A DNA stretch of 33,930 nucleotides, from contig NW_021831920.1 of assembly GCF_006345805.1 (NCBI RefSeq), forward strand, positions 1-33,930, given 5' to 3'. Shown here piece after piece: positions 1 to 32,739 of this stretch. Under the pieces are notes generated by a model. The model saw only the letters and a list, made by a program, of their open reading frames with translations, did no database searches and was not told the DNA's origin. Positions within the stretch are counted from its first letter, which is position 1. Every line of letters begins with the position of its first letter. Made by a program: the position numbers and the translations under genes. The DNA is from Octopus sinensis. Lineage: Eukaryota.

Positions 1-2445
1 GTGTTTAGAGAAAGCTCGACCCGAATAACAAAGCAGACCATTTTGACAATATACAATCCACAAATTGGCAGTCCCTACGATTTAAGCCACCCCCTTCAGG
101 AAGTGGGGACACAGGATGGAGGGTTGAATTCCGACCTTTGGATGTATATATCTTAATAATAAAAGGTATGGTGTGTGTCTGTCTGTCTGTCTGTCTGTGT
201 GTCTGTCTGTCTGTCTGTGTGTGCACACCAACTTCAAATGGCAATACGATGTCCTCGACTTACATGATGAGGTCCTTAAACCTTCCCCCCCAAAAAAATT
301 AAAAAAAATTTTCTGCATTTTGGTTAAAATGAACAACTACAATGTCCTCGACTTACATGATGAAGTCCTTAAAACTTCCCCCCCAAAAAAATTAAAAAAA
401 AATTTTCTGCATTTTGGTTAAAATGAACAACTACAATGTCCTCGACTTACATGATGAAGTCCTTAAACCTTCCCCCCCAAAAAAATTAAAAAAAATTTTC
501 TGCATTTTGGTTAAAATGAACAACTACAATGTCCTCGACTTACATGATGAAGTCCTTAAAACCTTTCCCCCAAAAAATCAAAAAATTTTTTTCTGCATTT
601 TGATTAAATGAACAACGCGAATGTCCTCGACATTCATGATGAGGTCCATTAAAACCTTCAAGGCAAAAATCTCACGTATTAAGAATATCCTTGATGAAAA
701 CGACAGCGAGAATATTAACAATGATGAACTCCCAATTATTCGCGATAAAGAAATTCAATTCATCCTATGTTTTTTCTCTTAAAATTAAATGCATATATCA
801 TTATCGACCATGAATCAAAATTAAAGCTATTATCATATTTGACTTTGACAGAATGTGCAATCACAGATTGCACGACTTTGAATAGAGTGTGCAAGTAACA
901 GATTTAGAAAAAAACCACTTTGATAGTTGAAACCACATTAGCACAATCATTAACCAATTTACCACCAATTGACGCACGACCTTGAATAGAGTGTGCAATT
1001 AACAGATTTTGAAAAACACTTTGATAGTTGAAACCACATTAGCACAACCATTAACACAATTTACCACCAATTGACAGCGCAATCAGAAGAATTTGCGTAA
1101 AAATATTAACTATTTACTTGAGTTTTTCGTAAAGATAGAATTTATTTTCGGTATGCCTCTTTTCCTAAACTTTTTTATTATTCAAAAATAATTTTTTAAA
1201 TAGATAACCGAAGGAGGAAAAACGAAGCTGAAGAAAAAACGGTCAGCTTAATAAGGTAATTAATTAAATCTTTTTTGTGTGTCGCTTTTTTGTGTGTCGC
1301 TTTCTTGCCTGCCGCATCTCTGCCTGCCGCATTTCCGCCTGCCGCATCTCCCCCTGCCCCATTTCCGCCAGTAAAAAATAAAAAAAGAAAAAAAAGGAAA
1401 TTACAAAGGAAAAATGAAAAAATTAAATATAAAAAAAAATAAACCACAAAAAATGAAAAAAAAAGTTTGCAATGACAATAAACAAGGCCCAGGGACAGTC
1501 ATTAAAGGTAGTTGGGTTTTATTTTTAGAGTGAGTGCTTTTCACATGGACAGCTGTATGTGGGATGCTCGAGGTAGGCAGAAGAGAAAATTTATTCATAT
1601 ATGCCAAGGAAGGACGGACGACAAACATCGTTTATCAACAGGCGATAGAATAGGGTTACATTAAACCAGGTAGTTTTATACATCTACATAAACTTATAGT
1701 TGTTTGATGAAACAGGCCCTCCGCAGGAGCTAGGTCGCGGTGAGCGAAGCGAGCTGCCGAGCTAGTATTTAATATATAGGTACAAACTACTGACTTTGAG
1801 AATTCGGCTTTTGTGTTTTTTGTGATTTTAATTACACGTGCTGCTCTCTCTTTGGGGACTTGTGGAAGGTCAGTGGACTTTCGGGTGCCCATATCAAAGG
1901 TGACCCCTCTGAGGTCATTTATTCAGGTGGACGAGAATATGAGCAGATCTGTACAGAGGGATGCAGTGGTGGATCAAAAGTTTTATTTCCGACTGGACTC
2001 GCTAAATCCGACGAGAGAATATTGCAAGGAAAATATAGTGGAGATGTCGATTGATGAGATTATGAACGGAAGTGTATATTGTGGTGTGATCGTGTGAGTT
2101 TAGACACGTTTTTTGGGGTTGATTGAGTTTATAAAACAATATATCACCACTCATCCTGACGTGGAGGCGTCCACGTTTTGTTTGTTTTCGAAATACCTCA
2201 AGTTATTGTCTGGAAGGGCCTCAGGGAAGTTGATTACTGGGGCTAAGTTGATGGGGGATTTTATTTTGTCTCATCCTGACTATAAAGGGGACTTTTGTGT
2301 GGGTGAGTCGGTGGAGTATGATTTGTTGGTTTTCCTCAGAGATTTGACTGACGAATTGGTTTCTCCAGAAAATTTTTTTCCGGATAATAATTTGTCGCGA
2401 GCGCAGCGAGCGACCGAGCGCAGCGAGCGACCACTCAATTTCTAG
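1..2445 (+). CDS. GCLC: Glutamate-cysteine ligase catalytic subunit, 3' half. Exons <1-143, 1780-1899, 1927-2073, 2104-2391, plus a TE-derived extension to 2445
   Basis: Spliced translation DHFDNIQSTNWQSLRFKPPP..GWRVEFRPLD|VQTTDFENSAFVFFVILITRA..DFRVPISK|VDENM..RDAV..KFYFR..MSIDEIMNGS|..GLI..YLKLLSGRASGKLITGA..FILSHPDYK matches the eukaryotic GCL catalytic family. GT-AG introns at 144-1779, 1900-1926 and 2074-2103 preserve frame. One probable missing A near position 11. Confidence 0.95.
171..222 (+). repeat. (GTCT)n/(GT)n microsatellite in the Helitron 5' region
   Basis: Seen directly; a shorter counterpart lies at about 20729-20756 on the minus strand. Confidence 0.95.
248..655 (+). repeat. 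~93-bp tandem array (~4.4 units) inside Helitron copy 1
   Basis: Unit (g/a)atgtcctcgacttacatgatga.gtccttaaa.cttccccccaaaaaaattaaaaaaaattttctgcattttggttaaaatgaacaactac starts at 248, 341, 435, 528 and 620. Confidence 0.95.
871..1075 (+). repeat. ~104-bp tandem duplication inside the Helitron
   Basis: cacgac(t/c)ttgaatagagtgtgcaa...ttaccaccaattgac begins at 871 and 975; also duplicated in copy 2 (about 19575-19775). Confidence 0.9.
1466..1653 (+). pseudogene. Helitron Pif1-type helicase C-terminal remnant
   Basis: FAMTINKAQGQSLKVVG..FSHGQLYVGCSRVG..TTNIVYQQAIE* with a frameshift; these are helicase motifs V/VI. Confidence 0.9.
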
Positions 2446-2992
2446 ATCCGATCAATCAAAAAATCTATAATTGACAAACCCAGGCTTGTATTTGGGATTA
2501 AATATATTCGATAACAAAAATTAAAATCGATGCCAAAGCAGAATGAGCTTTAAAACCGATTTCATAAATAAAAATAATATTTTAAAATTTATAATTGATA
2601 TTTTAGAATAATGAGAAAAATCTAAATGCTTCATAATTTAAAAATGTCAAAACAAGAATCTTCTGAAGGAGCAAGCCTGTCTGCACAGTTCATTTTTGAT
2701 TAGAAGACCTAATTTTAGAGATTAAAACGAAAAAATAGCAATGAGATCTGTCAAATTATTACCCCCCCCCTCACAACCTAAAATTAGCGTTCAGTATTCA
2801 TTGATTTTACTTTTTCTATTAAGGTCTACTTATAAATTATTTTATGGGATTCAATGGAAAACTTAAGTTATTTCAATTTTAATTTTGAATCATGTTAAAA
2901 TTTTAAATAATTTAATAATATATTTGTTGATGATAGGCTTGTTAGGTGTCAAAGTTGCGTCTAGCGTTCGGTCGCGCGCTGCGCTCGCGACA
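2393..2992. mobile_element. 600-bp MITE with TGT...ACA termini (Ginger/Tdd-like)
   Basis: 29-bp TIRs TGTCGCGAGCGCAGCG(A/C)GCGACCGA(G/A)CGC with 2 mismatches; 5-bp TSD TAATT at 2388-2392 and 2993-2997. Confidence 0.9.
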
Positions 2993-3048
2993 TAATTGAT
3001 TTCAGATTTTAATTATTTGTTATTTTCTTTATCAATTTTGATAAAATC

Positions 3049-4162
3049 TGTGACCGGTTTCTGAGCGGACCCGGTTTTTGGGAGGACCAGGTGCGTATAT
3101 TAAAACAAAAAATGGATAAAATAATTTATTTTCATTAGAAAATAAAAATTGGTTTTATTTTTTATTATATTATTGTAATAATGAATTAATTAAATTCAAC
3201 ATAAAAAATGGGTTTCGTTGTACTTTCAAAAGCAAATCTTCAAAAAATTAAAAAAATCAAAGAGTTGAGGGATCTAGATGAAGTGATTGAAAAAGAGAAA
3301 AGCATAGATTTAGAATTCACGCAAAAAAATTTGAATTCTCTGACGGAAAGGCATTTGTTCGAAAAAACAATTGCTTACTCAGATTTTTTTGTATAGAAGA
3401 GAAAGAACTAAAACTAACAATGATTGAGGTTATTTATAAATCTCCTTATGTTCATTAAACTGATATCGAAGAATTCTTTTTGGTTATAATAATTATGTTA
3501 TAAATGAAAATTTTAGAAGGCACATAATTCTAATCATTTTGGCAGAGATAGAATGATTAGTCAGCTGTCAGAAAAAATTTACGGTGTTACTCGAAATGAG
3601 ATTGAAATTTTATTAAAAACTGTGTTTTTTGGCAGGTATAATAATTAAAATAAGGCGATTAGTCAAAGAGATTAATGGCAACAAAACCTCCTATTAGGCC
3701 AATCATAGCCGATCTCATTGACTTAAGGAGATATTCAGAATTAAATAAGACGGTCCATGCAAATTTTAAAATTCTCTAAGTGAAGAGATACCGCGGCCGT
3801 AGGCCGCATAGGGGACTAGTTGAATTTTTATATCAAACCTTGTGGGTTAGAATGGTTTTTTATTGACAGTTATTTTAAGATTTGATTTTTAAAATATTTA
3901 GGTTTAAAATCATTAAATAAAAATATAATGTTTTTTTAATATTTTACACAAAAATCAAATAAAATTACTTATTTAAAATTTAAAAAGCACTTTTGAAGGG
4001 TATGTTGGTTTTGTGAGCAATGATAAAATCAGAAACAGCTTAAGAAATTATTTAAACGTGGTCTAATTTATTGTATAACTATTTTCAGGATAAAATAAAA
4101 CGATTTATACAATTTTTTGTGTGGTCCTTCCAAAAACCGGGTCCGCTCTAAAACCGGTGACA
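3049..4162 (+). mobile_element. Ginger/Tdd-like DNA transposon, degraded deletion derivative
   Basis: 40-bp TIRs (3049-3088 and 4123-4162, 4 mismatches); TSD AAATC at 3044-3048 and 4163-4167. Integrase-like remnants HNSNHFGRDRM..GVTR and TKPPIRPIIA/DLIDLRRYSELN at about 3520-3750. Confidence 0.85.
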
Positions 4163-4280
4163 AAATCTTATCGTTCTGAGTTGACAATTTTAATTTAAGT
4201 TTTGTTTTAATTCTACAAATCTATATTTCTTTTATTTAATTTTTAAAATATCAAACTTATTACTTTTATTTAATTTCGAA

Positions 4281-4420
4281 CAAATCCTGCTCTAAAACGC
4301 TGAGACCTGGAATCTAACCACCAAAGAACTAGAACAGCTCAACTTTTTCCACAAAAAACTATTAAGACTACTCCCAGGAATTCCCTAGCTAAAAAAGATG
4401 AGCATCGAAGAACTCTATAG
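4281..4420 (+). mobile_element. Old RTE-like LINE fragment (post-RT region)
   Basis: QILL*NAETWNLTTKELEQLNFFHKKLLRLL parallels PVLLYNSSTWGISDTELKNLDSFHRKQLRVL of the RTE element near 25010-25100. Confidence 0.65.
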
Positions 4421-4499
4421 AATTACTCATTTTTTTCAAATAATAATTAATTTAGCTAAATAGACGCGTTAATGAAGTTTATGGAAACAATTATTATGC

Positions 4500-6470
4500 A
4501 TGGATCGACGTAAGAAAGCTTTTGACTCAGTGAGTCACGAATTTCTTTTTGAAGTTTTGGAAAACTCAGGACTACCTAAATGGATAACGAAATTTATGAT
4601 GTCAATAATTCCTAACTGGAGAGTGTCGTTAAGATTAGGAAAAGAGCTGCTTGGAACAGTTAATATTGATCGTGGTATACTCCAAGGTGACTCACTGTCA
4701 CCACAGTTATTTGTATTGGTCTTGGATCCATTAAGCAGGATTTTATCTTTAAAATATCCGAGTATGTCAATCAATACTGGTGAAGACAAGTCCTTAACTT
4801 TTTCTACCAATCATTTTCTATTCATCGATGATTTGAAGCTTTTTGCTCAGAAGGAAGAGACACTGGCACGCATGATGGAGGATGTGAACATTTACTTTAA
4901 ACTGGCTGGTTTGGAGAAGAATTTTGAGAAATCAGCGACAAATTGTTATTTGTTGAGGAATGAAGCTACATTAATGGATGGACTAGATAGCTATCGCTCT
5001 CTGGGGGTGCTAGAAGACAGATGCAGTAATGTTCTTAAAGAAGATGTACTCAAAAATATTAAAGAAGAAATGCAAAGCGTATTGGAAGACTATCGGAAAC
5101 TAAACTAAATGCAGTCAATCTATTTAGAGCAATTAATGAGCATGCTCTATCGCTGATTAACTATTATATCGGTCTACTCGATCTGGAACCATCTTGTTTC
5201 GAAGAAATGGACAAGTTTGTCAGAAAGCTGTTGGCTGATTTGAAAATTCACATGAAGCCAGCCTGTAAAGAAAGACTGTATCTGCCAAGAGATACACTTG
5301 GAAGGGGACTTGTATCAGTTGCCTTTAAGGCGGAAAAAATGCTGTTGGACTTCAAAACCAATTTGGAAAGGCGAAAGTTAATCTCCTTGAGAAAAGCAGC
5401 AATTTTGTGGGCCGAACAGAAAAGGAAAACCCATATGGCCACAATCACAGAATTCCTGCATTGTAAATATGGAACAACCACACTCGATGAGATTGCTAAA
5501 TCACTACGTGACTTGCAGATAGAGTCACTGTTGCTTAGTATTAAAAAGAAAAGGTTGCATTCGAAGCTATTTGAGTCGCTTGAGAATAATACTTTTGATA
5601 TCCCAACATCTTCAACATGGCTAAAGAAAGGGAATATATCTCCTAAATCTGAGGCAATGTTCTCTTTTCTTCAAGACAGAAACGTCTTTTTCAGAAACTC
5701 TGATGAAAAATGCCCACATTGTAAATCCTCGCCTAAAACCGTGGACCATCTTGCGACGCGATGCAGTAGAATGCTAAATTCAGATTATACCAGAAGGCAT
5801 AACGAGATTGTGAGGTGTGTTCACATGCACTTGTGTCGGAGATTTGGAATGAAGAAGTCCAAGAGACTGAAAAACCACTCCGTGCAGTGTATAATGTCGA
5901 ATAGCTCTGCGGAAATTCGGGTCGATACTACAATTCCAACTGAACTAAAAATACAATATAACAAGCCTGATATATTCCTGTATGACAAGAAGGAAAATTT
6001 GATATGGATCATTGAAGTGGGTGTTACCTCGATAGATAATTTGAAATCGGTGGAAGTGGAAAAAATGCATAAATACGACATTCTAGCCAGTGAATTACAA
6101 TTAATTCACAAGGCTAAGGTAAAGATTGTACCGATTGTCCTCACGTGGGATGGGATAGTCTCTACATTCTTCAGAAAATATATGGACCTTCTTAAAATCA
6201 AAGAAAGTGTGCAAGCATACATCCAGACTGTTAGTTTGAAAAAACAATGGAAAGCATGATAGTAGAACACAAATTGGCTTCGAAAATATGTCTACCTCAG
6301 GTAACTCATTTGACGAAGGACGGAAATCGGTGAAGAGACGGCGAGATTCTGTAGTTTCCGCCGATGAAGGAAACAACTCCGAAGTGGGAACAGATAGCGG
6401 GAAGAGGATTCCGAGAGTAAACTTGGCGGAGCAAACTAATATGGAAAAGGAAAGTTAATTAGTTAATTAA
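4500..6470 (+). mobile_element. 5'-truncated RLE-type non-LTR retrotransposon (R4/Dong-like, R2 superfamily)
   Basis: RT motifs KAFDSV, ILQGDSLSP and FIDDLKLF; ERLYLPR..GRGL; CCHC knuckle CPHC..TVDHLATRC; RHN; restriction-like endonuclease KPDI..IIEVGVT..K..KY. Frameshifts fall at A-runs near 5065 and 6240. Confidence 0.92.
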
Positions 6471-6715
6471 TTATTTTATCTTTCATGTCTAGCCTGTTCA
6501 TTATAATAATTTTTGAAATATAAATTCACTTCTTCATGAAAAAAAATAAAAGTAACTAAAGTGTCAATCATATATTTACTAAAAAATATTTTATAAAACA
6601 AACAATCCAAAAAAGAGTTTGACATTTAAAACAAAAAGGACATCTTTTTCCTTATATGTCCATGATTCAGTGGCATTTTTGGAGTTTAAATTTTTGTTTT
6701 ATATAACTCTGTTTT

Positions 6716-7250
6716 TCGGCCGGTTGAGTATGCGCACTGGTAGAACTATGCAAACCGATAGCAACATACCAACCAGCAATATTCCCAGGACACATATTAC
6801 TATGATCTCACTAGTGTCCTAAACCGAATTTTCAAATTAGCGTTAAAAGCACTATTCGCCATTGGTGTTTACTTCTCGGTAAGAAGAAAATCACAAAATT
6901 ATAAAAAATGTCAATTTGTGTTCTAATTCTATTTTATATTCACTATAAATAATTTTTTTGTATCGGGATGATCGGTTTTGAGATATATGAACATGGTATC
7001 CCGGTTGGTCCTCCCTTACTTGTTCACAAAAAATTTCCTACATTTAATTCTCTGACTGTTCAGATTTGTTTAAAGTTTTTTATATGAAAAAAGATAGTTC
7101 TGTCCTCTCTTACACATCGCTGGAACCACCACTGTGTGTTAGACGCCTACACATTCTTAATATAACTCCCAACAGTCTCTCAAAAAAGCTGTCGAGAGTA
7201 TGTTGATGATTTTGACAAATTCTTATATATATAACAAGTCTATGCTTTTT
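6716..7250 (+). other. Unassigned coding-like segments, possibly a degraded intron-split host gene convergent with the Scm/SFMBT-like gene
   Basis: Higher-GC stretches with protein-like translations (YYYDLTSVLNRIFKLALKALFAIGVYFS then gtaag; IGMIGFEIYEHGIPVGPPLL) but in-frame stops and no recognisable family. Confidence 0.25.
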
Positions 7251-7300
7251 TGTAATATAAAGAAAATCGGTAAAAATATAAATAAAAATAAATGATCGTC

Positions 7301-8621
7301 TTAATGATAGGAATTTCTCAGTTCGTTGATGATCTTCAGGAGGGCTTCCGAAATTGTGTCCTTGAGACACATGGAATCCTTCAACGTTCGCTTGTTCAAT
7401 AAGAGAAACGATTGTCCGTCAAAATGCTGGGATCTCAGCACGGGAGCCACATTCCGGCATTTCGTAGACTCGATGTACTTTATCAAATTCTCACAGGACC
7501 AGTCCCGTGGGTCTTTTAGTAGGGAATTTGTATTTTCCTCAGAAAGTGGCAGAGTTTGACTACATTCGATTTTTCTCTTAGGTCTGGAACAGATCTCAGG
7601 AATTGAGAAATTTTTTGTACGTTTTTTGGATTTTGGAATTTTGGGGTTGCCTTGTTAATTTAATTTATTTAAATTTACATATTAAACAAGGTTTTTCTGA
7701 TAAATCGACGAGGGATCTTTTAATTTTAGACACAATTTGAGTAGAAAGTGACTCAGTTGTCCCGCAAATCACAGACCTCAAACTTGTGAAAACTGTCGAA
7801 TTTACTGTTTATTAAGTACATAAATTTAAAAATACTTTTTTACGGATATCTGATTGAACTGGTTAAATCTCCGAAAACACTTAAAATTTCATTCAGACGT
7901 TTAAAATTTGATGTACATTTAAGGATATACTCCTTTAGTGACTTAAGGACCATACAAATTGGCCCAGGTCCAATTATTTTGGGAATTCGAAGTATTTCTG
8001 ACACATAAAGGTACTTCCCTGAGTAGCAATGAGCATTAATGAAGATCTCAGGACTCCAAAGGTCCTCAATTCTCCTAATTTCCACGTGGTCGTCCAACAT
8101 ATTTGATAAAAGGGCTTTCAACAGTATACTTCTATCTTGTTCACATAGTCGTGGCAATTGTGGCTGACTGAGTGGATAACTGTTTGATTCAGCCCACGCA
8201 AAGGGGAGGATTTGAGGACTGTAGATAGAATAGATCAAAGTCGATTCCTCGTTTATTTTGACAAAAATCAAATGTCCAGCAACTTTGAGGATTGTTGCTG
8301 GGCAGACACTTTGATTATTTGTAGTCGTAGTTCTTTAGGAGTATCAGCAGATTGTCTGCCTGGGAAGACTCGTCGTTTTGTTGCTGGGATTAGGACTGGC
8401 TGATACTAAAAATTTGATGATTTTTTCGAAGGTTTCTCGCAGTTTTTTGCGTTTATCTTTGTAGACGGAGGGGTGGAACTTTGGTGGGTCTCCTGATTTG
8501 AATTCTGAGTTAAATAGTGTTTTAAATACTTTCCTTTTAAATTAGTATTTTTAGATCGGTATTGTTCTGTTGGGGCAATACAATTTCCATTTCTTTTCGT
8601 TTTTAACTGTTTTTTGCACAA
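7301..8621 (-). CDS. Scm/SFMBT-like Polycomb protein (MBT + SLED + C-terminal SAM); 5' part unresolved
   Basis: MBT: SVCPATILKVAGHLIFV..SPQILPFAWAESNSYPLSQP. SLED: IFINAHCYSGKYL..RIPKIIGPGPI..VL. SAM: DPRDWSCENLIKYI..LRSQHFDGQSFLLL. The 28-nt intron at 7651-7678 restores frame into the SAM domain; a probable 31-nt intron lies at 7805-7835. One in-frame TAA (7840-7842) and unresolved frameshifts upstream of 8330. Confidence 0.8.
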
Positions 8622-8859
8622 AATAACAAAACGTTTAAATTTGTTGTTAAAAGAACTTCAATTGAAAAACTCTTTTTAATTAAAATATAGCCGCAGCTAG
8701 CAAATGAACCCAGGACCTTTGTCGAAGTATGGAATAACTGATTTGTGAGACTAACCTGCTGTTACGGCAATTAGGCGGAATTGTTGTTAATAAAATAATT
8801 ATAAACATGATTATTTCTGATATAAGATTTATATATTTTAATCTAATTAACATTTAAAC

Positions 8860-9749
8860 ATGTCTTGTTCGGATGGAATATGGGTCAGAAATTAAATGTT
8901 ATTTATTAGAACACTTCTTTGACATGGGAACAATCGAATCCGAATTTTACGACATGTTTCACGAAAGTTGTCCTTATTTGGATTCCTTGTTTAATTTATT
9001 TTGTTTTGTCGTTATTATATGTCATCAAATTACTAATGACGAAGAGAGAGTTATTTTTGTTCAATAAAATTCACATTTTTAAAAAGGTTTGCATCTCATC
9101 ACTTAAATAACAGATTTTTAGCTCTATTTTGTCTGCCGTGAGTTTAATCCACATGGCCTACGCAGTCCACTTGCGACAACAAGAACCAATAGAAGAAATA
9201 CTTTCTTCCGTTATTTTTGCCATTTCCACGGTTTTTTAATTTTTTTTGAATCAAGTTATCTGCCACAATTTTCACTTTTTATGAGAAAACTGCCAATTTG
9301 GAACCGATTCCTCATCTGACACTAACTCACATTCTGGTCCTCTTCTCCAGAATTCGGCGTCTTTATTCAAACGTGGGATATTTTAAACTTAATCTCAGAT
9401 GCCACTGTTTGGAAAAATCACACTTTTTTAATATTCTCGAATTTGTATTTTTGGTAGTCATGTCTGTTCTCTCCCTCCAGGTCGACCGATTGTCTTCAAA
9501 TATAGCACAGAATAAAGTATCCTTTCACTGATTACATATAAGGAATGTTTTCCCGAATAAAGGGTTTCCTATTCAAATAAAATCATGTGCTTTTGGTTTT
9601 TAAAGTAATAGGGTGGTGTATTATGTGTTAGATATGTTAACATGGCGAGGAAAGGGACGCTGAAGGAGACAGACTTGTGGACTGTTGACTCAAATTTAAA
9701 CTTTTTGGCGCTGATCAAAGAAATGGACCAAAAGTTGGATCAAATCTAG
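8860..9749 (+). pseudogene. ABCC/MRP1-type transporter, N-terminal TMD0+L0 only (truncated)
   Basis: Six GT-AG introns (8884-8909, 9087-9113, 9231-9255, 9373-9398, 9517-9542, 9605-9631) give MSCSDGIW|NTSLTWEQSNPNFTTCFTKVVLIWIPC...|ECFPE*RVSYSNKIMCFWFLK|YVNMARKGTLKETDLW. This resembles MRP1 W..SNPDFTKCF...LVWVPC and CPE..ASF..ITFWW....L...DLW. Stops at 9558 and 9747, one frameshift near 9430, then a TE at 9810. Confidence 0.85.
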
Positions 9750-9809
9750 CTTGAAATATTAGAATAAATGAAGAGAAAAGAAAATATTTTGCCATTTCAA
9801 TGTTAAATA

Positions 9810-9893
9810 CAGTAAAACCTCTCGAATCCGCCAAATTTGGGACCTGGGAAATTACGGCGGATTCGAGAGTTTGCGGATTCGAGGAGTTTTACA
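9810..9893. mobile_element. ~85-bp Tigger/pogo-type MITE
   Basis: TA|CAGTAAAACCTCTCGAATCCGCC left end with a degenerate inverted right end; nearly identical to the terminus at 17309. Confidence 0.7.
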
Positions 9894-10038
9894 TCTTTTT
9901 CTCTCTCGAATTACGAGCTAAGTCTTTACGAAAAAACTTCTTGACACTTCAAAACTTATGAATGATTGAGACAACAGGTTTGGGAGAGAATTAAGCAGGT
10001 TTAACCAAAAAATTGTTTCATAAGTAGCCTTTATAATA

Positions 10039-10538
10039 TGTCGCGCCTCACGGTGGCGACAATACCACGCTGGCGACCAGAGCGGCCTTCATTGTTGACA
10101 GGATTGACAAAGTGACCTACATAGTTTGAAACTAATTACTGACTAAAAATAATTGCTAAAAATTTAAAAAACTTGACATTTTTTATTTATATTCATAGTA
10201 ACTATTCTGGTTTCATTTCGTAATTCGATCTAAATAGTTCCTTCTTTATCCATCAGTTTCGCCATAGCCCGTGTCAATGCTTGATTAAATCGCCTGATTT
10301 ATTTCAAATTTACAAATTTCGCAGTCTTTTATAATTTTTTAGATAATAGGACGTTTCACAGTAAGATAAAATTCACTACACTTCTTATGAATCTTTAGAA
10401 TTCCATTCTTATAATCTTTAGCGAATGCCAATGTCTTTATCTCCATTTCATTGAGAGCAATTGTGATTTGGATATTATCGTCCTTTAGATAAAGACTATG
10501 AATTAGTAATTGAAAATACCGATCATCAATGGCTTTTC
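10039..10538 (-). mobile_element. Degraded Ginger-like integrase remnant
   Basis: Minus strand GILKIHKKCSEFYLTVKRPII*KIIKDCEICKF fused to RFNQALTRAMAKLM, paralleling 30060-30590; TGTCGC..GCGACA mini-palindrome at 10039-10061. Confidence 0.6.
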
Positions 10539-13247
10539 CAGCGGTTCTCTATTGCCGTTCTTAGGAGGGACAGTTTGGAGATCCGTCAAGCCGCTCCCCT
10601 TCCCCTCGGCTAAAAGAATAATTAATTATCATCGTTGGTTGGATGGTTAAAATAATTAGATCATAAATTACCATAAATTGATTTGCTTTTTTGTAAATCT
10701 GTATTTTCGAATTTAGATTTAGTTTGTGCGGGTTCTTAGAGTAGGACATTTACAAGATTTTGGTATTCACTGTCATTTTTCACGTAACTTAAAGTATTGA
10801 GACCAGTGTTCCCTCTAAGCGAGTGGTAGCTATGCGCGCTGGGCACATTGCATTGTGCAGCGTTATAAAGTGACGTGTGCAAAAAATTTTGGGGGGGGGA
10901 AATTTTACAATTAAAAAACCAATGGTTAAAAAAATAGGTCTAGTCAATTGGATATTCTCTTCTGTTTTTATTTTGTATCCAAAATTTGTATACTCGATCA
11001 AGATCCACTGTATTCCCACTTGTTAAATAGAACTTGATTCGCATGATCATCTCCAAATGGTCAATCTCAAGTCTATTACGTAGTTTAGTTTTGATACAGT
11101 TCATCAAACTAAATCCACGTTCAGCATCAGCACTCGACGCTTGAAATGTGCCACAAATATCCACAAATGTTGCAGTGGCTGAAAATTTTTTCTCCGCTAG
11201 TATATAGTAAATTACATCTTCAAATGTTTTCAAAGCACCAGAGTGCAGTTTTTCTTTTAAAATAAACTTGAGATCTGTATATTCCGACTGCAGTTTTATG
11301 AGTGGGACTTCTGAAGAGAGTAAATTTTCATATTTTTTCGCTAATTTAATTATCTCCTCTTTTCCAAATTCAAAGTTTGTCTGATTTTGAATTGCTTGAG
11401 TGTCAAATGCTACCCATTCTCTTAATTCGTCAGCTGGAAATCTTTCTTGTAAATGCAGATAAACATGCTCGATAAAGCATAGGATTTCATCTGTATTTGT
11501 ATCTCCATAACCAGTTGTTGATAACAACATCTTCACACTGTCACTCCAGTAAATTTCATTTCCATCCAAATATTGAGATTTCAGCTTCGAAATTTTTGCT
11601 CTGGCAAACTGTACAGCTTCTATGGTCGATATACAGCTTCTTTGGAAAACTGTTCACAAATCTGCTAATTCAGCCAAAATTTCATTTAAGACAGTTAAAG
11701 CAACATGAATAAGAGGATTTTGAAGTTGTTTTAAGCAATATTTTGCAATCGGATCATTATCATCTTCAACCTGTTTCTTGAAATATTCAATTAAAATTGT
11801 GTAGTTTTTTATCAAAGCGTTAACAGCAAAATGCCGAGACACCCATCTCACTTCATTTAGTGGCTTAAATGAAACGACATCTTCAACAACAACATTAGCC
11901 AGGTCCTGAAATGCAGCTTTTTTTATACTTGATCGACTGAAAACAGTATAAACAGTCCGGAGTAATATTTCAATATTTTTCACAAGATTATTTTTTTTCC
12001 ATGCATCATCGAATATTATACTTTCTACTGCGCAGAAAAAAATTTCGCTGCGCAGCAAGGTGCAAACTGCTGCGCGGCCGCGCACGCGCGCAGCTTAGAG
12101 GGAACACTGCTCGTCAGGGCCAGGTTTAGACATGTTCGAATATTTATTATAAAAATAACATGAACATTATGAAAATAACAGAAAATTTAATAGTAATTTA
12201 GTGAGATTTCTGATCTTGTTTGCTCAGAATAATTTTACTTATATCAGGCTCTATGTTCGACAAAGCTACTCGCATATCATCTTGTACCCGTAGTCTATTT
12301 CTATATTTTGTTTTTAGAAAAGTCAGACACGACATCGCCATTTCACAGTGATAAAGAGTGGGGAATGCAAGTATTGATTCCAATGCAGTTTTACTCAAAA
12401 TGGGGAATTCTTTCTCCATCTGACACCTAACAATAATAAGTAATTATTAATGAGAATACCAAAAATCTAATAATGAAGTACATTTGAAAATAATTGGAGT
12501 AGACTGATTACATTGAAGTTCAATCAAGCTCTGCTGAAAATTGAGTTCCTGATATTCTTTAAATGAGGTCAAGAAAGGTTGAACGATCCAGTTTGGAATT
12601 GGGTCTTCAACAGGAAAATAATCATCAAATTTTGTCTTGAGATTTTCCAGATGTTTGATTATCAGACTTAGAAGAACATTATCCGGTGGGTTGTGTCCGA
12701 GATGATATTCAAGCATTGGGAACATTGATGTTATTCCTTTTTTTATTTTCATTATCCACAATAATAACTTTTTTTAAAAGCCATTATTATTTGATTGACC
12801 TCGACAATTGATATATAAAGACCTTTAAATAAATTAATAAAAATTTTACCCTGCATTGACAAATTAAACTCATTTAAAATGTTTAAAAAATCGGCAAGAT
12901 AATACATTTTCGATTTAAAAGTAAAATCATCGAATTGGTCGGCCCAATCATGCTGCATATTATCACGCAAAAACAAAGAGATCGCAGGGGAAAGTTCACA
13001 AATTCTCGAAAGGATTTTCCCCCTTGAAAGCCACCTAATTTCAGAATGATAAAGTAGTATAGAATGAAAATTCCTGGGGACCACTAAAAATTTTCTGGGG
13101 ACCACGATTGAGAACCGCTTGATTAATTTCAATGTTTTTGATTTATACTTAATTGTACAATTAGTTTTAACTTTAATATATTTTTATTTTTCGAAAATTC
13201 CTGGGGACCACTAAAAATTTTCTGGGGACCACGGTTGAGAACCGCTG
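10539..13247 (-). mobile_element. hAT transposon, Charlie/Buster (ZBED8/SCAND3-like), internally deleted, with two tiny introns
   Basis: CAGCGGTTCTC termini at 10539 (+) and 13247 (-). Transposase pieces LLYHSEIRWLSRGK..YLADFLNILNEFNLSMQG, LLDFW|CQMEKEFPILSKTA..TYHCE-like..KTKYRNRL..DDMRVALS..QKSH*. The 8-bp flanks do not match, so the left boundary is less certain. Confidence 0.8.
10804..12109 (-). mobile_element. Second hAT family (ZNF862/C17orf113-like transposase, 5'-deleted), nested in the Charlie-like element
   Basis: Perfect 17-bp TIRs CAGTGTTCCCTCTAAGC; VRWVSRHFAV and hATC dimerisation motif ASSADAERGFSLMNCIKTKLRNRL; no 8-bp TSD found. Confidence 0.88.
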
Positions 13248-13547
13248 GTCTATAATAAATTGTGTCTCTATATCCTTCAAAAATGTTTTGAATTGTTGTT
13301 AGATTAAATTAACCACTTGAATAGATGATTTATTACATGATTAAAACAAAACTAATTTTCGTAAACTTTCCTCCAGGCAAGATAAATTTAGTTTGGCCTC
13401 TTTATGCCGAAGATTAAATAAATTTGTGAAATAACTATTTTCTTATTCTTTTAATGCTGAAAATTCCTATTTTAATATTTTATCGCATGTTGGATTGCAA
13501 TCTTGCTTTTAATAAAATGTGAATTATTAAGAAAGAAACTAATTAAC

Positions 13548-16500
13548 TAAGTAATTTTACTAACTAAGTCCAGAGCCTTCGAAGTGAGCAGAAGGCGGCA
13601 CTCCACGCACCTCCTCCCCTTCTTCCTCCTCTTCTCTGGCACTGTAGACCTTCGAGAAGGTGCAGTCCAGCGCCTCTTGCTGACTAAACGTCAGGAAAGG
13701 GCTGGATCGGCGAGCATCAAACGAGACACTCTCCAGAGTCCTCTTAAGAACAGTTGACTGTATATAAGCCTGTAGAGACTTATCTACATCCAACTGTCTT
13801 AAGTACCGCTTGTGGTATTTGGTGACCAGTCCATCCCATGTCATCACACACGGGATGACATGGACTTTGCACTGGTGCATCAGTCCTAGCTCGTTTGCAA
13901 GGAGGTCATACTTCCTCCTTTTCTCCACTTCCACTATCTGCAAACGGTCTAGGCACGTGATGCCCACCTCCACGATAACAATCTCCCCGGTGACCTTATC
14001 GTGGACCACAATGTCGGGTCTGTTGTGCTGGACAACAATCGAGGTGCGTATGGGGGTATCCACCTTAATGCACACCCGCGAGTTCTCACACACCGATTGA
14101 ACTCGATGGGTTCGCAACTTTCTGGACCGCCTCAAGCCGTACTTATTGCAGAGCAAAAGATGGAGGGACCTCACCACCTCGTTATGCCTCCATGTGTAAT
14201 CATGGTAAAGCATACTCCCGCACTTCGTGGCTAAATGGTCAACGGTCATTGCCTTACTCTTACAGTGGTTACACTGTTTCCGTTGACCATTAAAAAAGTT
14301 TCTATCCTGCAAATATGAGAACAACCCTTCTGATCGGGGAGAGTTATTCCCATATTTCAGCCACGTAGATGACGACGATACGTCAATGTGCGGGTTGTCC
14401 AGGCTGCTAAAGAGAGTCTTGTGAAGGACTTTTAAGTTGATCTTTTTAATTAAAGACTCCTTTTGAAGTTTGATCAACTCCTTCACATTAACTTGGGTAG
14501 CACCTAGACCATACTTAGCCGACACATAGCCTTTTATGGTCCCTAGGTGTGTACCACGCGCTTTTTCAGCAGCAAGGATGGCAGCCTTCCTTGGGATACA
14601 CTCGACCCACTCCACAAGGTGTCGTGCATCTTAGTAAGAATTCGCTCACTTAAGTGTACGATGTTACTCAGTCCACGTCCTAGCTGCCCGCGAGACAAGT
14701 ACAATCTCTCCTTATTGCTTGCCAACACGTGGACATGATTCTCTCGGAGTACTCTTCGGACAATAAGGTCCATTTCATCGTACTCACTCGGCTCGAATTC
14801 GATCAGGCCAACGTAGTAGTTTAGCAATGAGATGGAATACTCGTTCAAGGCATGAAATAAGTTCCGTGCATTAAGCCGAGTCTTACATAACATTGCCGCC
14901 CTACTACGCACACCCTCCACTACACACTTTCTCGTTTCGGGTGTGATTAATGAGGCTGGACTCTCAACCACACCAAGATACTTATATCCTTGGTGTTCCT
15001 CCAAGACTTTGACTAGGTCACCACAAACAGGGGTGTTAGTCGCCGACTTGTTGTAATTGAGCTCCAACCCCACGGCCTTCATGAAACCTTTCAGGACTTT
15101 ACCCATTGAGTGAAGGATCTCTGAAGACCGAGCGAACAGCTTAATGTCGTCTATGAACATGAGATGGTTGGTGCTAAAACACCCTCCTCCATGTTCGATC
15201 GACATTTGTTCGAATTGGGCAGTGAGGACTCTACTCAGCGGTTCTAGGCAGAGGACGAACAGCAGCGGAGACATGCTGTCGCCCTGTAATATGCCCCTCT
15301 CTAGTTTCACCTCGCCTATATCGCATTTGTTGTAATTTAGATGGACGTTCCACCTGTCCATCACAGTTGCAACAAATTTGATAAACCACATTGGCAATTT
15401 AAGCCTTCGCAGACACTCAACGAGGTAGGCATGATCAACCGAGTCATATGCCTTCTTCACATCCACCCACATTGACACTAGTGAGTTTCCGTGGGCTCTC
15501 GCGAGACATTTGTTGATCAGTGCCTGCTCCTTAGCTCCCTGGCAATCCCGCCGAGTACCTAACTGGTTCTCGGACAGAATCCCATTCACCTCCACGAAAT
15601 TTCTGACCTCAGTAGCCACCACCTTAGTCATCAACTTGTACAGGTTGGGCATACAGGTTATCGGACGATAATCTGTCGGAGCGGAAGGGTTATCTACTTT
15701 AGGGATCAAATAAGTGACCCCAGTACATAACCACTCTGGAATCGAGCCAGGGTCTAGTGTAAACTGTTCGATTGCTCGACACATGCAATCATGGATAGGT
15801 TTGCAATTTTTAATAAAGAAATTATACACTTTATCGACCCCAGGTGTCTTCCAGTCAGAGAGACGGTTTACTGCTTCATCGAACTTCTTGCGGATGTCAG
15901 GGACACCACAAGACTCGGTCATCAAGGGAGCATCGGGTCCACAAAACGGAAACGACACACCCTTGCGAGGACGTGCTTTCCACATACTCCCCCATGTGTC
16001 AAGCATTTCGGCCTTTTGCTGGGTACCCTCCTTCGTCTCTCCGTGCAACCGACGATAGAACGACCTGCGATTAAATTCAAACAGGTTGTTCTCCCGCCTG
16101 CGCTGACACCGAGACTCATGAGTTGAGAGCTTCTTCTGATAAACGAGAATCAGCTCCTCCCTCTCTGCCCGGACACGCCTCAACTCGTTGAGGTCCCATT
16201 TGGCAGCTCGTTCCCGACGAAGTAAAGTACGCACCAAGGGGGGAGTCTTGCCCTTGACCCCATTGCTCACATTCAAAATGTGCCCAGTCAGCGCTTCCAG
16301 CTCGGCTTTCCTTGCGGCTACTTTTGCGGCAATGTTTTCTCTCCATCTACTCTTTGGGGCAGGCCTCTGAGTGATTTCATCATAGGTTGTCTGTGCCGAG
16401 TACAAATAAGAGAAATCTCGTCCATTGTCTCCGGAGGCTCACGCACGATCGCGTAAGCTATGGCACGATTGATGCAACCCATCACGTCACTTCTGAGTTG

Positions 16501-17050: not shown

Positions 17051-17308
17051 CATAATGTTTTTTACCAAATTTATAACTATATATAATATCATATCCTATT
17101 TGGTATTAATAATTATATAATGTTTAGGGAATATTGGCAATGTCTTTATTTTTTGTATATAAATTGTCTATGATGACAGAACTCGGAATTTCGCTCTTTA
17201 TTTTGAAAATAATGTTAATCAGCATTTGTATATTGGCTCTTTTCGGGGTACCTAGTGGTAATGTATATTTATTTTCTCGGAAAAGATTTACTTCTGTTTC
17301 GGTAAGTA

Positions 17309-18420
17309 CAGTAAAGTCTCTCGAATCCGCCAATTTCGGGGATCGGCAAAATCTGGCGGATTCGAGAGACTTATCGATTTTTTAATCCATTAATAATTTA
17401 AATTATTAAGCCAAAATAATTAATTAAAAACAAAAAAATCAGCAAGTTTCGACTTGTTTCTTCTTAGAGTTTGGATCATTGAAGATCCAATGTTTTCAAT
17501 ATACTCAAGATTTTCTATATTAAAGAATTCTTCTTGATTATAGAACTCTTTTAATTTGTTTAAAGCGATAAAAGCCTCGTTAATGGTAACAACTTTCTGA
17601 CTTTGTTCACACGGTTCTTCGCTAATTTCTTGTTCTATTTTTTCTGAATTATTTAATTCAAGTTCTTCACTTTCATTATATTCAATCTCAATATAAAGAC
17701 TTTCTTCTAACGGATCAATAATATCCATTTTTTCCAGAATATTATCATAATTTTCAATTAAGGGATTTTCATAATTAATATTTTCATTGTTTTGAGTCCA
17801 TTTTGCATGAATGAAACAATTTAAAATTAAGGAACTTCTATTTTGTTCCAACTTTTCTATTTTGTTTCGAAATTCTTGAAACATCTTGGATTTTTAAACA
17901 ACCCAATTAGTAAGGGTGTTCGCTTATCTGTACCGTCAACATTTGTACATAACATAACAGAAACTCTGTCTTTCAGGACTTTATAGCCAGATTTAATGGT
18001 TTTACAAACACTCTTAGACGGTATCATTTTGTAAAATAAGCCAGTTTCATCGGCATTATAAACATTTTGAGCTCCGTAAAGACTGATTTTATTTTTGATT
18101 AATTCAATGAAATCTGATACTAAATTAGGGTCAAAATTTGGAGTTGCAGATTCTCCATGCATATTACGTAATTTCAAACCATTCCTCTTTTTAAATTTAA
18201 CTAACCACCCTTTGCTTCATTTGAATTCAGTAATCCCGAGATTCAATGCAAAGGCTTTTGCTTTCTCAGTAATAATCCTATCATTTAAAATGGCTCCTTT
18301 AAGATCCATTGAATTGACCCAAGCAATAGTATTATCATCGATTTCAGCAACTTTAAATATTGTTTGCGGGAAATGTCAGATCTTAGGTTATGAAACATAA
18401 TGTTAGATCCTCTTTTACTT
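17309..18420 (-). mobile_element. Tigger/pogo (DDE_1) transposon, internally deleted, one TIR visible
   Basis: TA|CAGTAAAGTCTCTCGAATCC at 17309. HTH-CENPB FK*SKGWLVKFKKRNG and YNADETGLFYK..KDRVSVMLCTN; later catalytic motifs deleted; acidic C-terminus 17420-17884. Confidence 0.85.
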
Positions 18421-18679: not shown

Positions 18680-18812
18680 GTTTCTTATCTTTATTTATTT
18701 ACTAGCTCGGCAGCTCGCTTCGCTCACCGCGACCTAGCTCCTGCGTAGGGCCTGTTTCATCAAACAACTATAAGTTATGTAGATGTATAAAACTACCTGG
18801 TTTAATGTAACC

Positions 18813-19203
18813 CTATTCTATCGCCTGTTGATAAACGATGTTTGTCGTCCGTCCTTCCTTGGCATATATGAATAAATTTTCTCTTCTGCCTACCCTCGAG
18901 CATCCCACATACAGCTGTCCATGTGAAAAGCACTCATTCTCTAAAAATAACCCAACTACCTTTAATGACTGTCACTGGGCCTTGTTTATTGTCATTGCAA
19001 AACTCATCCTCAAAGGAAATTGCATCCTTTTAAATCTAAATGGTAATTCATCAGAAATTATCGGAATTCGTGGAATATAAACATCCTCACCTCTATACTT
19101 ACCTGTTAATATCGTCGCCTCTATTACGTTAGCCATTAAATTTTTGGTAACTAACCTCGTTCCGTTGCATAATTTAGGTGGCGCAAGATTTCGTAATAAA
19201 ACC
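18813..19203 (-). pseudogene. Helitron Pif1 helicase C-terminal remnant
   Basis: LLRNLAPPKLCNGTRL..VIEATILTG..GEDVYIPRIP..PFRFKRMQFPLRMSFAMTINKAQ, then SHGQLYVG. Confidence 0.92.
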
Positions 19204-19940
19204 ACTGGCGGAAATGGGGCAGGCAGAGTAGCAGCAGCCAAAAAAGCGACACACAAAAAAGATTTAATTAATTACCTTAAGGTGCCCGTTTTTTCTTCAG
19301 CTTCGTTTTTCTTCCTTCGGTTATCTATTTAAAAAATTATTTTTGAATAATAAAAAATATTAGGAAAAAAGAGGCATACAGAAAATAAATTCTATCTTTA
19401 CGAAAAACTTATTTTCTTAAGGTCGTCTTCCCTCCTTCGGTTATCTATTGAAAAAATTATTTTTGAATAATAAAAAAGTTTAGGAAAAGAGGCATACCGA
19501 AAATAAATTTTAGCTTTACGAAAAACTTAACTAAATAGTTAATATTTTTACGCAAATTCTTCTGATGGCGCTGTCAATTGGTGGTAAATTGTGTTAATGA
19601 TTGTGCTAATGTGGTTTCAACTATCAAAGTGTTTTTCAAAATCTGTTAATTGCACACTCTATTCAAGTCGTGCGTCAATTGGTGGTAAATTGTGTTATGA
19701 TTGTGCTAATGTGGTTTCACTATCAAAGTGGTTTTTCAAAATCTGTTAATTGCACACTCTATTCAAAGTCGTGCAATCTGTAATTGCACATTCTGTCAAA
19801 GTCAAATATGATAATAGCTTTAATTTGATTCATGTCGATAATGATATATGCATTTAATTTTAAAGAGAAAAACATAGGATGAATTGAATTTCTTTCTCGC
19901 GAATAATTAGGAGTTCATCAGTGTTAATATTCTCGCTGTC

Positions 19941-20621
19941 GTGTAAGTCGAGGACATCGTAGTTGTTCATTTTAACCAAAATGCAGAAAATTTTTTTTTA
20001 ATTTTTTTTGGGGGGAAGGTTTTAATGACCTCATCATGTAAGTCGAGGACATCGTAGTTGTTCATTTTAACCAAACTGCAGAAAATTTTTTTTAATTTTT
20101 TTTGGGGGGAAGGTTTTAATGACCTCATCATGTAAGTCGAGGACATCGTAGTTGTTCATTTTAACCAAACTGCAGAAAATTTTTTTTAATTTTTTTTGGG
20201 GGGAAGGTTTTAAGGACCTCATCATGTAAGTCGAAGACATCGTAGTTGTACATTTTAACCAAAATGCAGAAAATTTTTTTTAATTTTTTTTGGGGGGAAG
20301 GTTTTAAGTACCTCATCATGTAAGTCGAGGACATCGTAGTTGTTCATTTTAAACAAAATGCAGAAAATTTTTTTTAATTTTTTTTGGGGGGAAGGTTTTA
20401 AGGACGTCATCATGAATGTCGAGGACATTAACGTTGTTCATTTTAATCAAATGCAGAAAATAATTTTTTGATTTTTTGGCGGGAAGGTTTTAAGGACCTC
20501 ATCATGTAAGTCGAGGACATCGTGGTTGTTCATTTTAACCAAAATGCAGAAAATTTTTTTTTAATTTTTTGGGGGGGAAGGTTTTAAGGATCTCATCATG
20601 TAAGTCGAGGACATCGTATGG
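19941..20621 (-). repeat. ~93-bp tandem array (~7.3 units) inside Helitron copy 2
   Basis: The gtcgaggacat core recurs near 19947, 20042, 20136, 20230 (gaagacat), 20324, 20418 (variant unit), 20511 and 20604. Confidence 0.95.
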
Positions 20622-20780
20622 TGGAAGATTCTTGGAGGAGTTCATGATTTTAAGCTTGTTCCCCATTAATTATAAGGGGGAAAGATTTTGACAATTTATC
20701 TGTACTTTGCCAATTTGAAGTTGGTGTGCACACACAGACAGACAGACAGACACACACCATACCATTTTATTATTAAGATT

Positions 20781-21300
20781 ATAATGACGTTGTGAAGCGC
20801 GCGCTAAACGCCGCTGGATTTCCCTCGATGTTAGAACCGATAGGACTAGACCGTGGAGATGGAAAACGCCCTGACGGGTCGACCTTATTCCCGTTCAGGA
20901 AGGGAATGGCACTCGTGTGGGATGTTGCCTGCGTAGACTCATTTTCCTCATCATCATTGGTTGACTCCGCTTCTCGTCCTGGATCTGCATCTGCCCTTGC
21001 CGAATCTAGGAAAACTGCAAAATATGCCTCTTTGACCGATACCTGCTGCTTCATTCCCCTGGCTTTCGAGACCAGTGGGATAATTGGACCCAAAGCCCTC
21101 CAACTCCTCTCAAAGATTGGTTTAATCATCTCGAGGAGGAGTCACGACAGTCGCGAACGAGCTGGCTTTTTCAGCGGATATCGTTCGCGATATTACGTGG
21201 AAATTACATGTCCATCCGCTCGGCGACTCATCTAAATTAGTTAACATCTCTATTTTACTTGTTATTTTACCTTGCTAAAAAAATCAAAAAAAATCCTTAG
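20781..21300 (+). mobile_element. 5'-truncated CRE-like RLE retrotransposon fragment
   Basis: NDVVKRALNAAG..EP..KRPDG..F..G..LVWDV..AE..K..KY..FIPLAFETSG; A-rich tail at about 21275-21293. Confidence 0.85.
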
Positions 21301-28538: not shown

Positions 28539-28547
<9 letters not shown>

Positions 28548-28569
<22 letters not shown>

Positions 28570-28998
28570 ATAGAAATAAAACAAGACAAAATTACAGATA
28601 GCTAAGTTAGTTAAAGGCCTCACGAGACACCCGACCAGCCGCGCGAATGGCGAAGACGTTCCTCGGATCACAGCAATCGACAGACGTTCCAGGAGCCAAG
28701 AAAACTCTCTTGGATCGTGACTAGTCCTTGAAATCCGTCGACCGAGCGAGCGAAGGAAGCGGAGTGTCTGGGACCGAAGATCCCGGAGGACTCCAAGGCA
28801 ATTGGAGTAAAGAGCAGCGAGTTGGAGGTGGCCGTACTTGAGAATCTTCGCGCTCCTCGGCCTGCCTGGAAGCGTGCCCAGGATGGCGGCGGACAGCGCG
28901 AGATTTCCCAGCGAGAACGTGTCCGAGCAGGTAGAATCCCAAATAAGGGATTTCCCCTGCTCGTAGGGGAAGGTGGACATGCCGTCAGGGCGTTTGCC
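28548..28998 (-). mobile_element. 5'-truncated CRE-like retrotransposon with poly(A) tail
   Basis: KRPDGMSTFPYEQGKSLIWDSTC..PIALESSG..WLLERLSIAVIRG; poly(A) of more than 20 nt; 12-bp TSD ATATTTAAAATT (28536-28547 and 28999-29010). Confidence 0.92.
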
Positions 28999-29039
28999 AT
29001 ATTTAAAATTAATCTATTAAATATTAAAACAAAAATATC

Positions 29040-32636: not shown

Positions 32637-32739
32637 TATTTTAATACTGTTTATTGTTATTTTGATTTCTTGTTCTATTTTTTTGTTCACTATTGTCTAT
32701 AGTGAATATTGTACTGATTTAGGTATTACCCTGATACTG

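Follow-up and report, generated by a model that had tools for sequence, protein, structure and literature searches.

The window analysed here is a stretch of 33,930 nucleotides (nt) that makes up the entire contig VCDQ01009320.1 of assembly GCA_006345805.1, whose proteins are labelled Octopus sinensis. The contig starts within a gene assigned to GCLC, and a 21-nt intron of this gene is occupied by a 1,615-nt insert that carries the hallmarks of a non-autonomous Helitron in the same orientation as the gene. The filled intron measures 1,636 nt, a 78-fold enlargement (1636/21), in line with the figure given by an earlier note on this DNA. The gene probably derives from a dicyemid parasite of the octopus kidney, and the reading that we prefer, which we hold at roughly even confidence, is that the window carries a recent, probably polymorphic, impaired GCLC allele (or a copy of the gene under relaxed constraint). 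The finding provides no evidence of any special capacity for splicing.

All introns described here were deduced from homology and from the continuity of the reading frame rather than from RNA. The contig holds only the 3′ half of GCLC, with the catalytic N-terminal half outside it, and the features of this part are as follows (a slash in the text marks a junction).

1–8 (+): end of the preceding GCLC intron (...GTTTAG), with an in-frame TAG at 6–8 and an open frame from 9
9–143 (+): GCLC exon, RKLDPNNKADHFDNIQSTNWQSLRFKPPPSGSGDTGWRVEFRPLD, identified by the Pfam GCS match and the alignment with yeast Gcl (3ig5)
144–150 (+): GTATATA, the 7 nt of the original 21-nt intron upstream of the insert, with the 5′ splice site
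151–1765 (+): non-autonomous Helitron copy 1, 1,615 nt, in GCLC orientation; 5′ end TCTTAATAAT..., 3′ end ...GCCGAGCTAG
1766–1779 (+): TATTTAATATATAG, the 14 nt of the original intron downstream of the insert, including a branch-like TTTAAT (putative branch site) and the 3′ AG
1780–1899 (+): GCLC exon (VQTTDFENSAF...VPISK)
1900–1926 (+): GCLC intron, 27 nt
1927–2073 (+): GCLC exon (VDENMSRS...IMNGS)
2074–2103 (+): GCLC intron, 30 nt
2104–2392 (+): last GCLC exon (TRFLGL...ENFFPDNN), as far as a miniature inverted-repeat transposable element (MITE); without the MITE, TGA would follow as the next codon

The upstream exon ends, by direct reading, in CGA CCT TTG GAT at 143 (peptide ...WRVEFRPLD) and is followed by GT at 144–145, and the AG at 1778–1779 is followed by GTA CAA ACT ACT GAC TTT GAG AAT (VQTTDFEN). 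Joining 144–150 to 1766–1779 gives GTATATATATTTAATATATAG, a 21-nt GT-AG intron in phase 0 between the D and V codons that consists only of A and T except for the splice-site Gs, and the last three bases of which (TAG) form an in-frame stop upon retention. The earlier claim that taking out 151–1765 leaves such an intron, joining RPLD to VQTTDFEN in frame, is thus confirmed by direct reading of the letters. With all three introns removed, the peptide matches Pfam GCS (PF03074) with an E value of 5e-69 over model positions 158–368 of 372, and aligns with yeast Gcl (3ig5, a solved structure; E 5e-23) without a gap at the junction (WRVEFRPLD/VQTTDFEN versus WRVEFRPFE VQLLDFEN). As the open reading frame (ORF) is restored across 143/1780 and is colinear with both yeast Gcl and the Pfam GCS domain, the gene is, on homology, the C-terminal half of GCLC with an intron at D/V, as the earlier note had named it. 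The fragment shares 45–52% identity with any animal GCLC in the protein database, and GCLC is not among the NCBI gene calls over positions 1–16259. A protein-database search with the spliced peptide, outside which lie the rest of this assembly and the D. japonicum assembly, returned nothing above 59% identity and so no near-identical GCLC, and gave no second GCLC and no RNA-derived protein; the sources of its two best matches were uninformative. With the same two assemblies outside the search, no empty-site allele was found. An exact-sequence look-up of a 110-residue ORF gave no match.

The nature of the insert emerges from its internal features and from a second copy in the window, which a repeat scan placed 17 kb away and inverted relative to the first.

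172–222 (+): (TGTC)n microsatellite in Helitron copy 1, the length of which varies between copies
245–659 (+): 93–94-nt tandem repeat (satellite) in the Helitron, 4.4 units in copy 1 and ~8 units in copy 2
1466–1653 (+): decayed C-terminal Pif1-like helicase remnant, FAMTINKAQGQSLK..FSHGQLYVGCSR..NIVYQQAIE*, interrupted by a frameshift and a stop
1728–1755 (+): candidate G+C-rich hairpin with an imperfect stem, AGCT.AGG.TCGC-GGTGA-GCGA.AGCG.AGCT, the end of which lies 10 nt upstream of the 3′ CTAG
18702–20778 (−): Helitron copy 2, 2,077 nt, with identical termini, at an A/T site amid other transposons, carrying a 130-residue helicase remnant

The junctions of copy 1 read GTATATA/TCTTAATAATAAAA...GCTGCCGAGCTAG/TATTTAA and those of copy 2 read CATTATAA/TCTTAATAATAAAA...GCTGCCGAGCTAG/TAAATAA, with flanks that are unrelated between the two copies apart from bases shared by chance, an A at the 5′ junction and TA at the 3′ junction; this leaves the ends certain to 1–2 nt only, and the bounds 151–1765 are set by the A/T convention. 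The 26–27-mers at the termini are confined in the window to copies 1 and 2 and never occurred in shuffled sequence. A third 3′ end was found on contig L006 of the same assembly (2835–3151, 97% identical), where ..GAGCTAG is followed by the host bases TAATCTT. Both full copies begin with TC (TCTTAATAATAAAA), and the CTRR-type 3′ terminus is CTAG in copy 1, copy 2 and the L006 copy. Host A and T flank the insertion without target duplication in the two full copies, and a T follows the 3′ end on L006. There are no terminal inverted repeats: the 5′ end TCTTAATAATAAAAGG and the reverse-complemented 3′ end CTAGCTCGGCAGCTCG have nothing in common, and in the inverted-repeat scan copy 1 pairs with copy 2 only. 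With TC and CTAG ends, insertion between A and T, and neither target duplication nor inverted ends, the hallmarks of canonical Helitrons are present, and the identification of the insert as a Helitron in the earlier note is upheld by these termini and by the second copy with identical ends.

Coding remnants point the same way. The remnant of copy 2 spans 130 residues with one stop (..LCNGTRLV..FAMTINKAQ*QSLKVVGLFLENECFSHGQLYVGCSRVGRRENLFIYA..) and shares 62–73% identity with PIF1-like helicases (E as low as 1e-56), for which Pfam Pif1_2B is precomputed; the direct Pfam matches of the remnant fall below the cut-off. The matching proteins are named ATP-dependent DNA helicase PIF1-like and come from spiders, aphids, a hagfish, nematodes and a sponge, a spread typical of Helitron helicases. 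In copy 1 ~60 residues of helicase remain. A Rep (HUH) domain occurs in neither window copy, so that both are non-autonomous deletion derivatives. No autonomous Helitron was seen in ~194 kb (the window together with 160 kb from seven other contigs, L004–L010), and those 160 kb contained just one further Helitron 3′ end, that on L006. Judged by its ends and contents, the insert is a non-autonomous canonical (Helitron1-type) Helitron, and copy 1 is by the same comparison a deletion derivative that keeps the last ~60 helicase codons and internal satellites. Duplications of 100–120 nt are also internal to both copies, and the G+C content of copy 1 is 34.9% versus 42.3% in the GCLC exons. The 3′ hairpin differs by one change in the L006 copy, located in the loop, and the fold of its region (1700–1770) is weak, no better than shuffles (z = −1.2). 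On L006, 2400–3151, the Helitron copy has only its last ~318 nt in common with the window copies, with unrelated sequence upstream, and is either 5′-truncated or a different family member.

Copies 1 and 2 are 99.3% identical over the last 303 nt, identical at the 5′ end barring microsatellite length, and 95.2% identical in the middle. By these figures the insertion of copy 1 looks young, and the near-identity of the two copies suggests that the Helitron family was recently active.

A second mobile element has struck the same gene at its stop codon.

2393–2992 (no strand assigned): 600-bp MITE; its 16-nt terminal inverted repeats TGTCGCGAGCGCAGCG are perfect, as is the TAATT target duplication (2388–2392 and 2993–2997)

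The MITE interrupts the GCLC stop codon, so that the frame gains 17 codons (LSRAQRATERSERPLNF) up to a TAG at 2443–2445; the MITE-empty site reads ...PDNN and then TGA. The MITE is a second young insertion in GCLC.

The identity of the host genome bears directly on how the filled intron should be read. The earlier note had put all other host introns at 25–31 nt. This holds for the two downstream GCLC introns (27 and 30 nt) and for two introns of a Scm-like gene in the window (25 and 28 nt), but a third intron of the latter is 39 nt long, so that the range in the window is 25–39 nt.

8334–7304 (−): Scm-like gene, in which introns of 39, 25 and 28 nt are needed for the frame; MBT 1.3e-10, SLED 3.7e-8, weak SAM

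Tracing of upstream MBT exons of the Scm-like gene was unsuccessful; they may be degenerate or very divergent. On sister contig L007 (23354–22218) an NSDHL-like gene of 1.1 kb, encoding 332 residues and matching the entire Pfam 3Beta_HSD model (1.4e-53), is complete only upon removal of five introns (38, 29, 25, 23 and 23 nt), bringing the inferred introns to ten, all of 23–39 nt. In its place the NCBI model at L007 16675–23354 draws 6.7 kb for a 215-residue product, and standard eukaryote gene prediction fails on these mini-introns. The earlier note had held that frequent kilobase-scale introns would make the filled intron unremarkable; none was found in the ~194 kb, in a search that was unsystematic, and the one apparent case, the 6.7-kb model, proved to be the 1.1-kb gene.

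Introns of this size have few precedents among animals. In Dicyema sp. the median intron is 27 nt and two thirds are below 30 nt (PMC6543705), and among 51 animal genomes mini-introns are known only from myxobolids and Dicyema japonicum (PMC13644364). D. japonicum lives in the renal sacs of O. sinensis, the host from which it was collected, and its genome has 36.7% G+C and 49% repeats with many long interspersed nuclear elements (LINEs); its mean intron is 38 nt and its gene set is reduced to 5,012 genes (PMC6736024). The G+C content of the window (36.3%) fits the D. japonicum value, although G+C of 34–38% does not discriminate octopus from parasite. The VCDQ records are contig-level, and record size is uninformative on chromosomal placement. 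The window combines mini-introns, an assembly labelled as a cephalopod and metazoan gene content (the Scm-like gene with MBT, SLED and possibly SAM), all as expected of a dicyemid. Taken together with the dicyemid literature, introns of 23–39 nt make the host probably Dicyema-like, and we infer from the way the genes are built, together with their context and the octopus label, that the gene probably comes from a mini-intron animal, a dicyemid (Dicyema-like) octopus kidney parasite. The low identity of the GCLC fragment to other animal GCLCs is as expected in a fast-evolving lineage. By extension, at least several other contigs of this assembly would likewise be Dicyema-like parasite DNA.

Two other origins were considered and rejected. 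A true octopus gene is at odds with introns of 23–39 nt and with only 45–52% identity to other animal GCLCs. A ciliate germ-line internal eliminated sequence (IES) is at odds with transposon ORFs and a GCLC that are open in the standard code, with ends of TC...CTAG versus the TA-YAG type of Paramecium IESs, and with a contig whose LINE, hAT-like, pogo-like and MBT/SLED content is typical of animals.

Transposon proteins of the window have relatives of their own. For the main LINE ORF, close relatives (98% and 72%) are confined to a handful of O. sinensis-labelled proteins, and no other cephalopods occur among its 127 matches. For the LINE reverse transcriptase at 14543–16405 (−), the nearest relatives beyond O. 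sinensis-labelled proteins are from microsporidia (Hamiltosporidium, Vairimorpha) and Babesia, at 34–48% identity; the distribution is odd and parasite-centred. If the parasite origin holds, entries of the form ‘uncharacterized protein LOC... [Octopus sinensis]’ (e.g. P0241, P0242) would be parasite transposon proteins.

What the insertion would do to GCLC expression depends on how such small introns are recognized. In D. japonicum little more than GTa and AG is left of the conserved splice signals, and a few As are the likely branch site (PMC13644364). With signals reduced to this extent, recognition probably leans on short length. The genome is half repeats, yet introns stay near 27 nt, which suggests to us that insertions into introns are normally purged and hence harmful. 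The Helitron family would have been recently active and would have landed in this intron owing to the A/T steps there. The insertion would put 1.6 kb between the 5′ splice site and the branch region with its AG, and would supply an AG of Helitron origin at a distance of 22 nt from the 5′ splice site, creating a candidate decoy that resembles the original intron.

144–165 (+): decoy mini-intron GTATATATCTTAATAATAAAAG, 22 nt (7 host and 15 Helitron), the use of which is predicted

The decoy AG at 164–165, in Helitron sequence, is the first after the 5′ splice site and the sole AG within 120 nt. Use of the decoy adds 34 residues before a TGA at 265–267, and full retention of the filled intron leads to a stop at 300. 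The sense strand of the Helitron contains 15 AATAAA/ATTAAA poly(A)-signal hexamers, all of which would have been brought into the gene by the insertion. With GTa...AG signals and introns nearly all below 40 nt, correct GCLC mRNA from this haplotype would most likely be lowered or abolished. The MITE on the stop codon would count, as a second young transposon, toward impairment or weak constraint. In a parasite whose multiplication within the host is clonal, a second allele could shelter an impaired one. The choice posed by the earlier note, between removal of a 78-fold longer intron and a silenced or polymorphic allele, is fairly put; the probable parasite host, the candidate decoy, the MITE and the youth of copy 1 together lean towards a recent, impaired and probably polymorphic allele.

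The chief rival to an impaired allele is that the insertion is tolerated, in that the 1,636-nt intron is removed correctly often enough because the ordinary animal capacity to pair distant splice sites has been kept; in that case GCLC would still work, and the insertion might be fixed. We regard this as a serious possibility, though distinctly short of an even chance, and several observations weigh on its side and against impairment. GTATAT at 144 survives, as do the AG at 1778–1779 and, 9–14 nt upstream of it, TTTAAT. The visible gene is otherwise intact, with 230 codons (691 nt of exon) free of stops and frameshifts and both neighbouring introns undamaged. The conserved GCLC exons contain 22 decoy-like GT..AG pairs of 20–31 nt, four of them starting with GTA (including GTACAAACTACTGACTTTGAG at 1780), and as these are evidently left unspliced, minimal signals are insufficient for splicing and use of the decoy is uncertain. 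Some longer introns do exist, since the mean of 38 nt in D. japonicum exceeds the median of 27 nt in Dicyema sp., and about one third of predicted introns are at least 30 nt (PMC6736024, PMC6543705). The dicyemid origin, too, is drawn from gene architecture and the octopus label rather than from a match to a named Dicyema sequence. Against tolerance, no conserved gene with kilobase-separated exons turned up in the ~194 kb, in the same unsystematic search, and the genes that could be traced are compact, e.g. the 1.1-kb NSDHL-like gene with its five introns of 23–38 nt. Introns that remain tiny in a half-repeat genome argue that insertions there are selected against, and the 15 poly(A)-signal hexamers on the Helitron sense strand, together with a second transposon on the stop codon that suggests weak constraint on this copy, further favour an impaired allele.

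The remaining explanations are less probable. The window could carry a redundant, decaying GCLC duplicate while an intact copy elsewhere supplies the enzyme, which would accord with two independent young insertions within 2.4 kb of gene (with the stop codon lost to one of the two), with the transposon-rich surroundings, and with a contig that holds only the 3′ half and so leaves room for upstream damage. We consider this unlikely, as neither a stop nor a frameshift interrupts the 691 nt of exon, the two neighbouring introns retain their splice sites, the Pfam GCS match stays strong to the domain end (E 5e-69), and duplicates are less expected in D. japonicum with its gene set reduced to 5,012 (PMC6736024). 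Removal at the level of DNA, with a germ-line Helitron excised from somatic nuclei (e.g. as a circle) and the 21-nt intron restored, is a more distant prospect. The insert is bounded by A and T, and precise excision would therefore leave a working intron. Helitrons transpose via circular intermediates and can excise footprint-free, and work by Noto and colleagues from 2003 reportedly concerns extrachromosomal circular DNA in Dicyema. A Dicyema assembly also holds thousands of apparently circular contigs, but these are mostly 600–800 bp, mutually unrelated and without protein domains, and diminution has been doubted (PMC6543705). Nothing in the window directly supports excision, and since neither copy encodes Rep it would need an autonomous element, of which the ~194 kb contained none; we judge it very improbable. 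Slighter still is the chance that the allele does not exist and reflects a mis-assembly or chimera of long reads, from which the assembly was presumably made. The record is a small contig that starts within a gene and is probably low-coverage contaminant DNA, but the exact Helitron termini at an A/T step speak against such an artefact, and once the insert is taken out, a GT-AG intron and the open frame return with single-base precision, which is not what chimeric joins produce.

The remainder of the window consists mostly of transposons (LINE reverse transcriptase and endonuclease ORFs, hAT-like, pogo-like and integrase fragments), and Rfam and tRNA scans of it found nothing. Directly downstream of the MITE, at 3046–4163, is a ~1.1-kb element with ~40-nt inverted ends GTGACCGGTTTCTGAGCGGACCCGGTTTTTGGGAGGACCA, and a 76%-similar end lies at 32609–32645. 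A 66-nt repeat (80% identical) at 9804–9869 and 17303–17368 contains the palindrome CTCTCGAATCCGCC...GGCGGATTCGAGAG and may be a small foldback or MITE-like element. An ORF without a Pfam match recurs near retroelement ends, at 20792–21235 (+), at 28540–29000 (−) and on L006 at 1–480, with the motifs ..DGSTLFPF..VWDVAC.D.F....L......G.AA..AE.RK..KY..L..; one copy adjoins the 5′ end of Helitron copy 2, and the ORF is probably a retrotransposon C-terminal domain.

The filled intron amounts to a natural experiment on whether the splicing of long introns persists in lineages with shrunken introns and reduced splice signals, or shortness is now required. Should the insertion prove tolerated, the novel reading would be that the dicyemid spliceosome, despite minimal signals, efficiently removes a 1.6-kb intron; were somatic excision true, a mini-intron animal would tolerate transposons in genes as ciliates tolerate IESs. 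The searchable literature makes no mention of Helitrons and dicyemids together, and within it no Helitron family from a dicyemid-type genome appears to have been described before this one. A practical by-product may matter more: the O. sinensis assembly and proteins named after the octopus appear to include parasite contigs, and mini-intron genes on such contigs are mis-modelled or missed by standard annotation.

Set against known systems, a transposon in an intron is commonplace and the kind of event is known, whereas the setting, a 21-nt intron in a mini-intron animal, is unusual. The insert resembles the canonical Helitron1-type non-autonomous Helitrons of animals and plants in its TC and CTAG (CTRR) ends, in insertion between A and T without duplication or inverted repeats, in the position of a candidate G+C-rich hairpin ~10 nt before the 3′ end and in a Pif1-like helicase remnant; it differs in that the hairpin is imperfect and not significant versus shuffles, and in that no Rep or autonomous partner was seen in the sequence covered. 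Internal tandem repeats, which the insert also has, have been described for several animal Helitron families. The maize allele sh2-7527 is said to be a mutant caused by a Helitron in an intron (reportedly described by Lal and colleagues in The Plant Cell in 2003). Both sh2-7527 and Hel-It1 in DFR-B of Ipomoea tricolor are alike to the present case, with a Helitron in the intron of a metabolic or housekeeping gene that threatens mRNA formation; their host introns, however, are of ordinary size and their phenotypes and aberrant transcripts are experimental, whereas here the intron is of 21 nt and the lineage is one with mini-introns. Among mini-intron systems, Dicyema has a median of 27 nt, myxobolid myxozoans have 22–27 nt and Paramecium has ~25 nt, comparable with the 23–39-nt GTa...AG introns found here, but the filled intron is ~60 times the median length of its lineage. 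An in-frame stop has been noted for Paramecium introns with lengths that are multiples of three, and the 21-nt GCLC intron is likewise a multiple of three with a stop. Paramecium eliminates transposon-derived inserts from its DNA as TA-bounded IESs; the GCLC insert differs from these in having Helitron ends and in lying in a genome that uses the standard genetic code.

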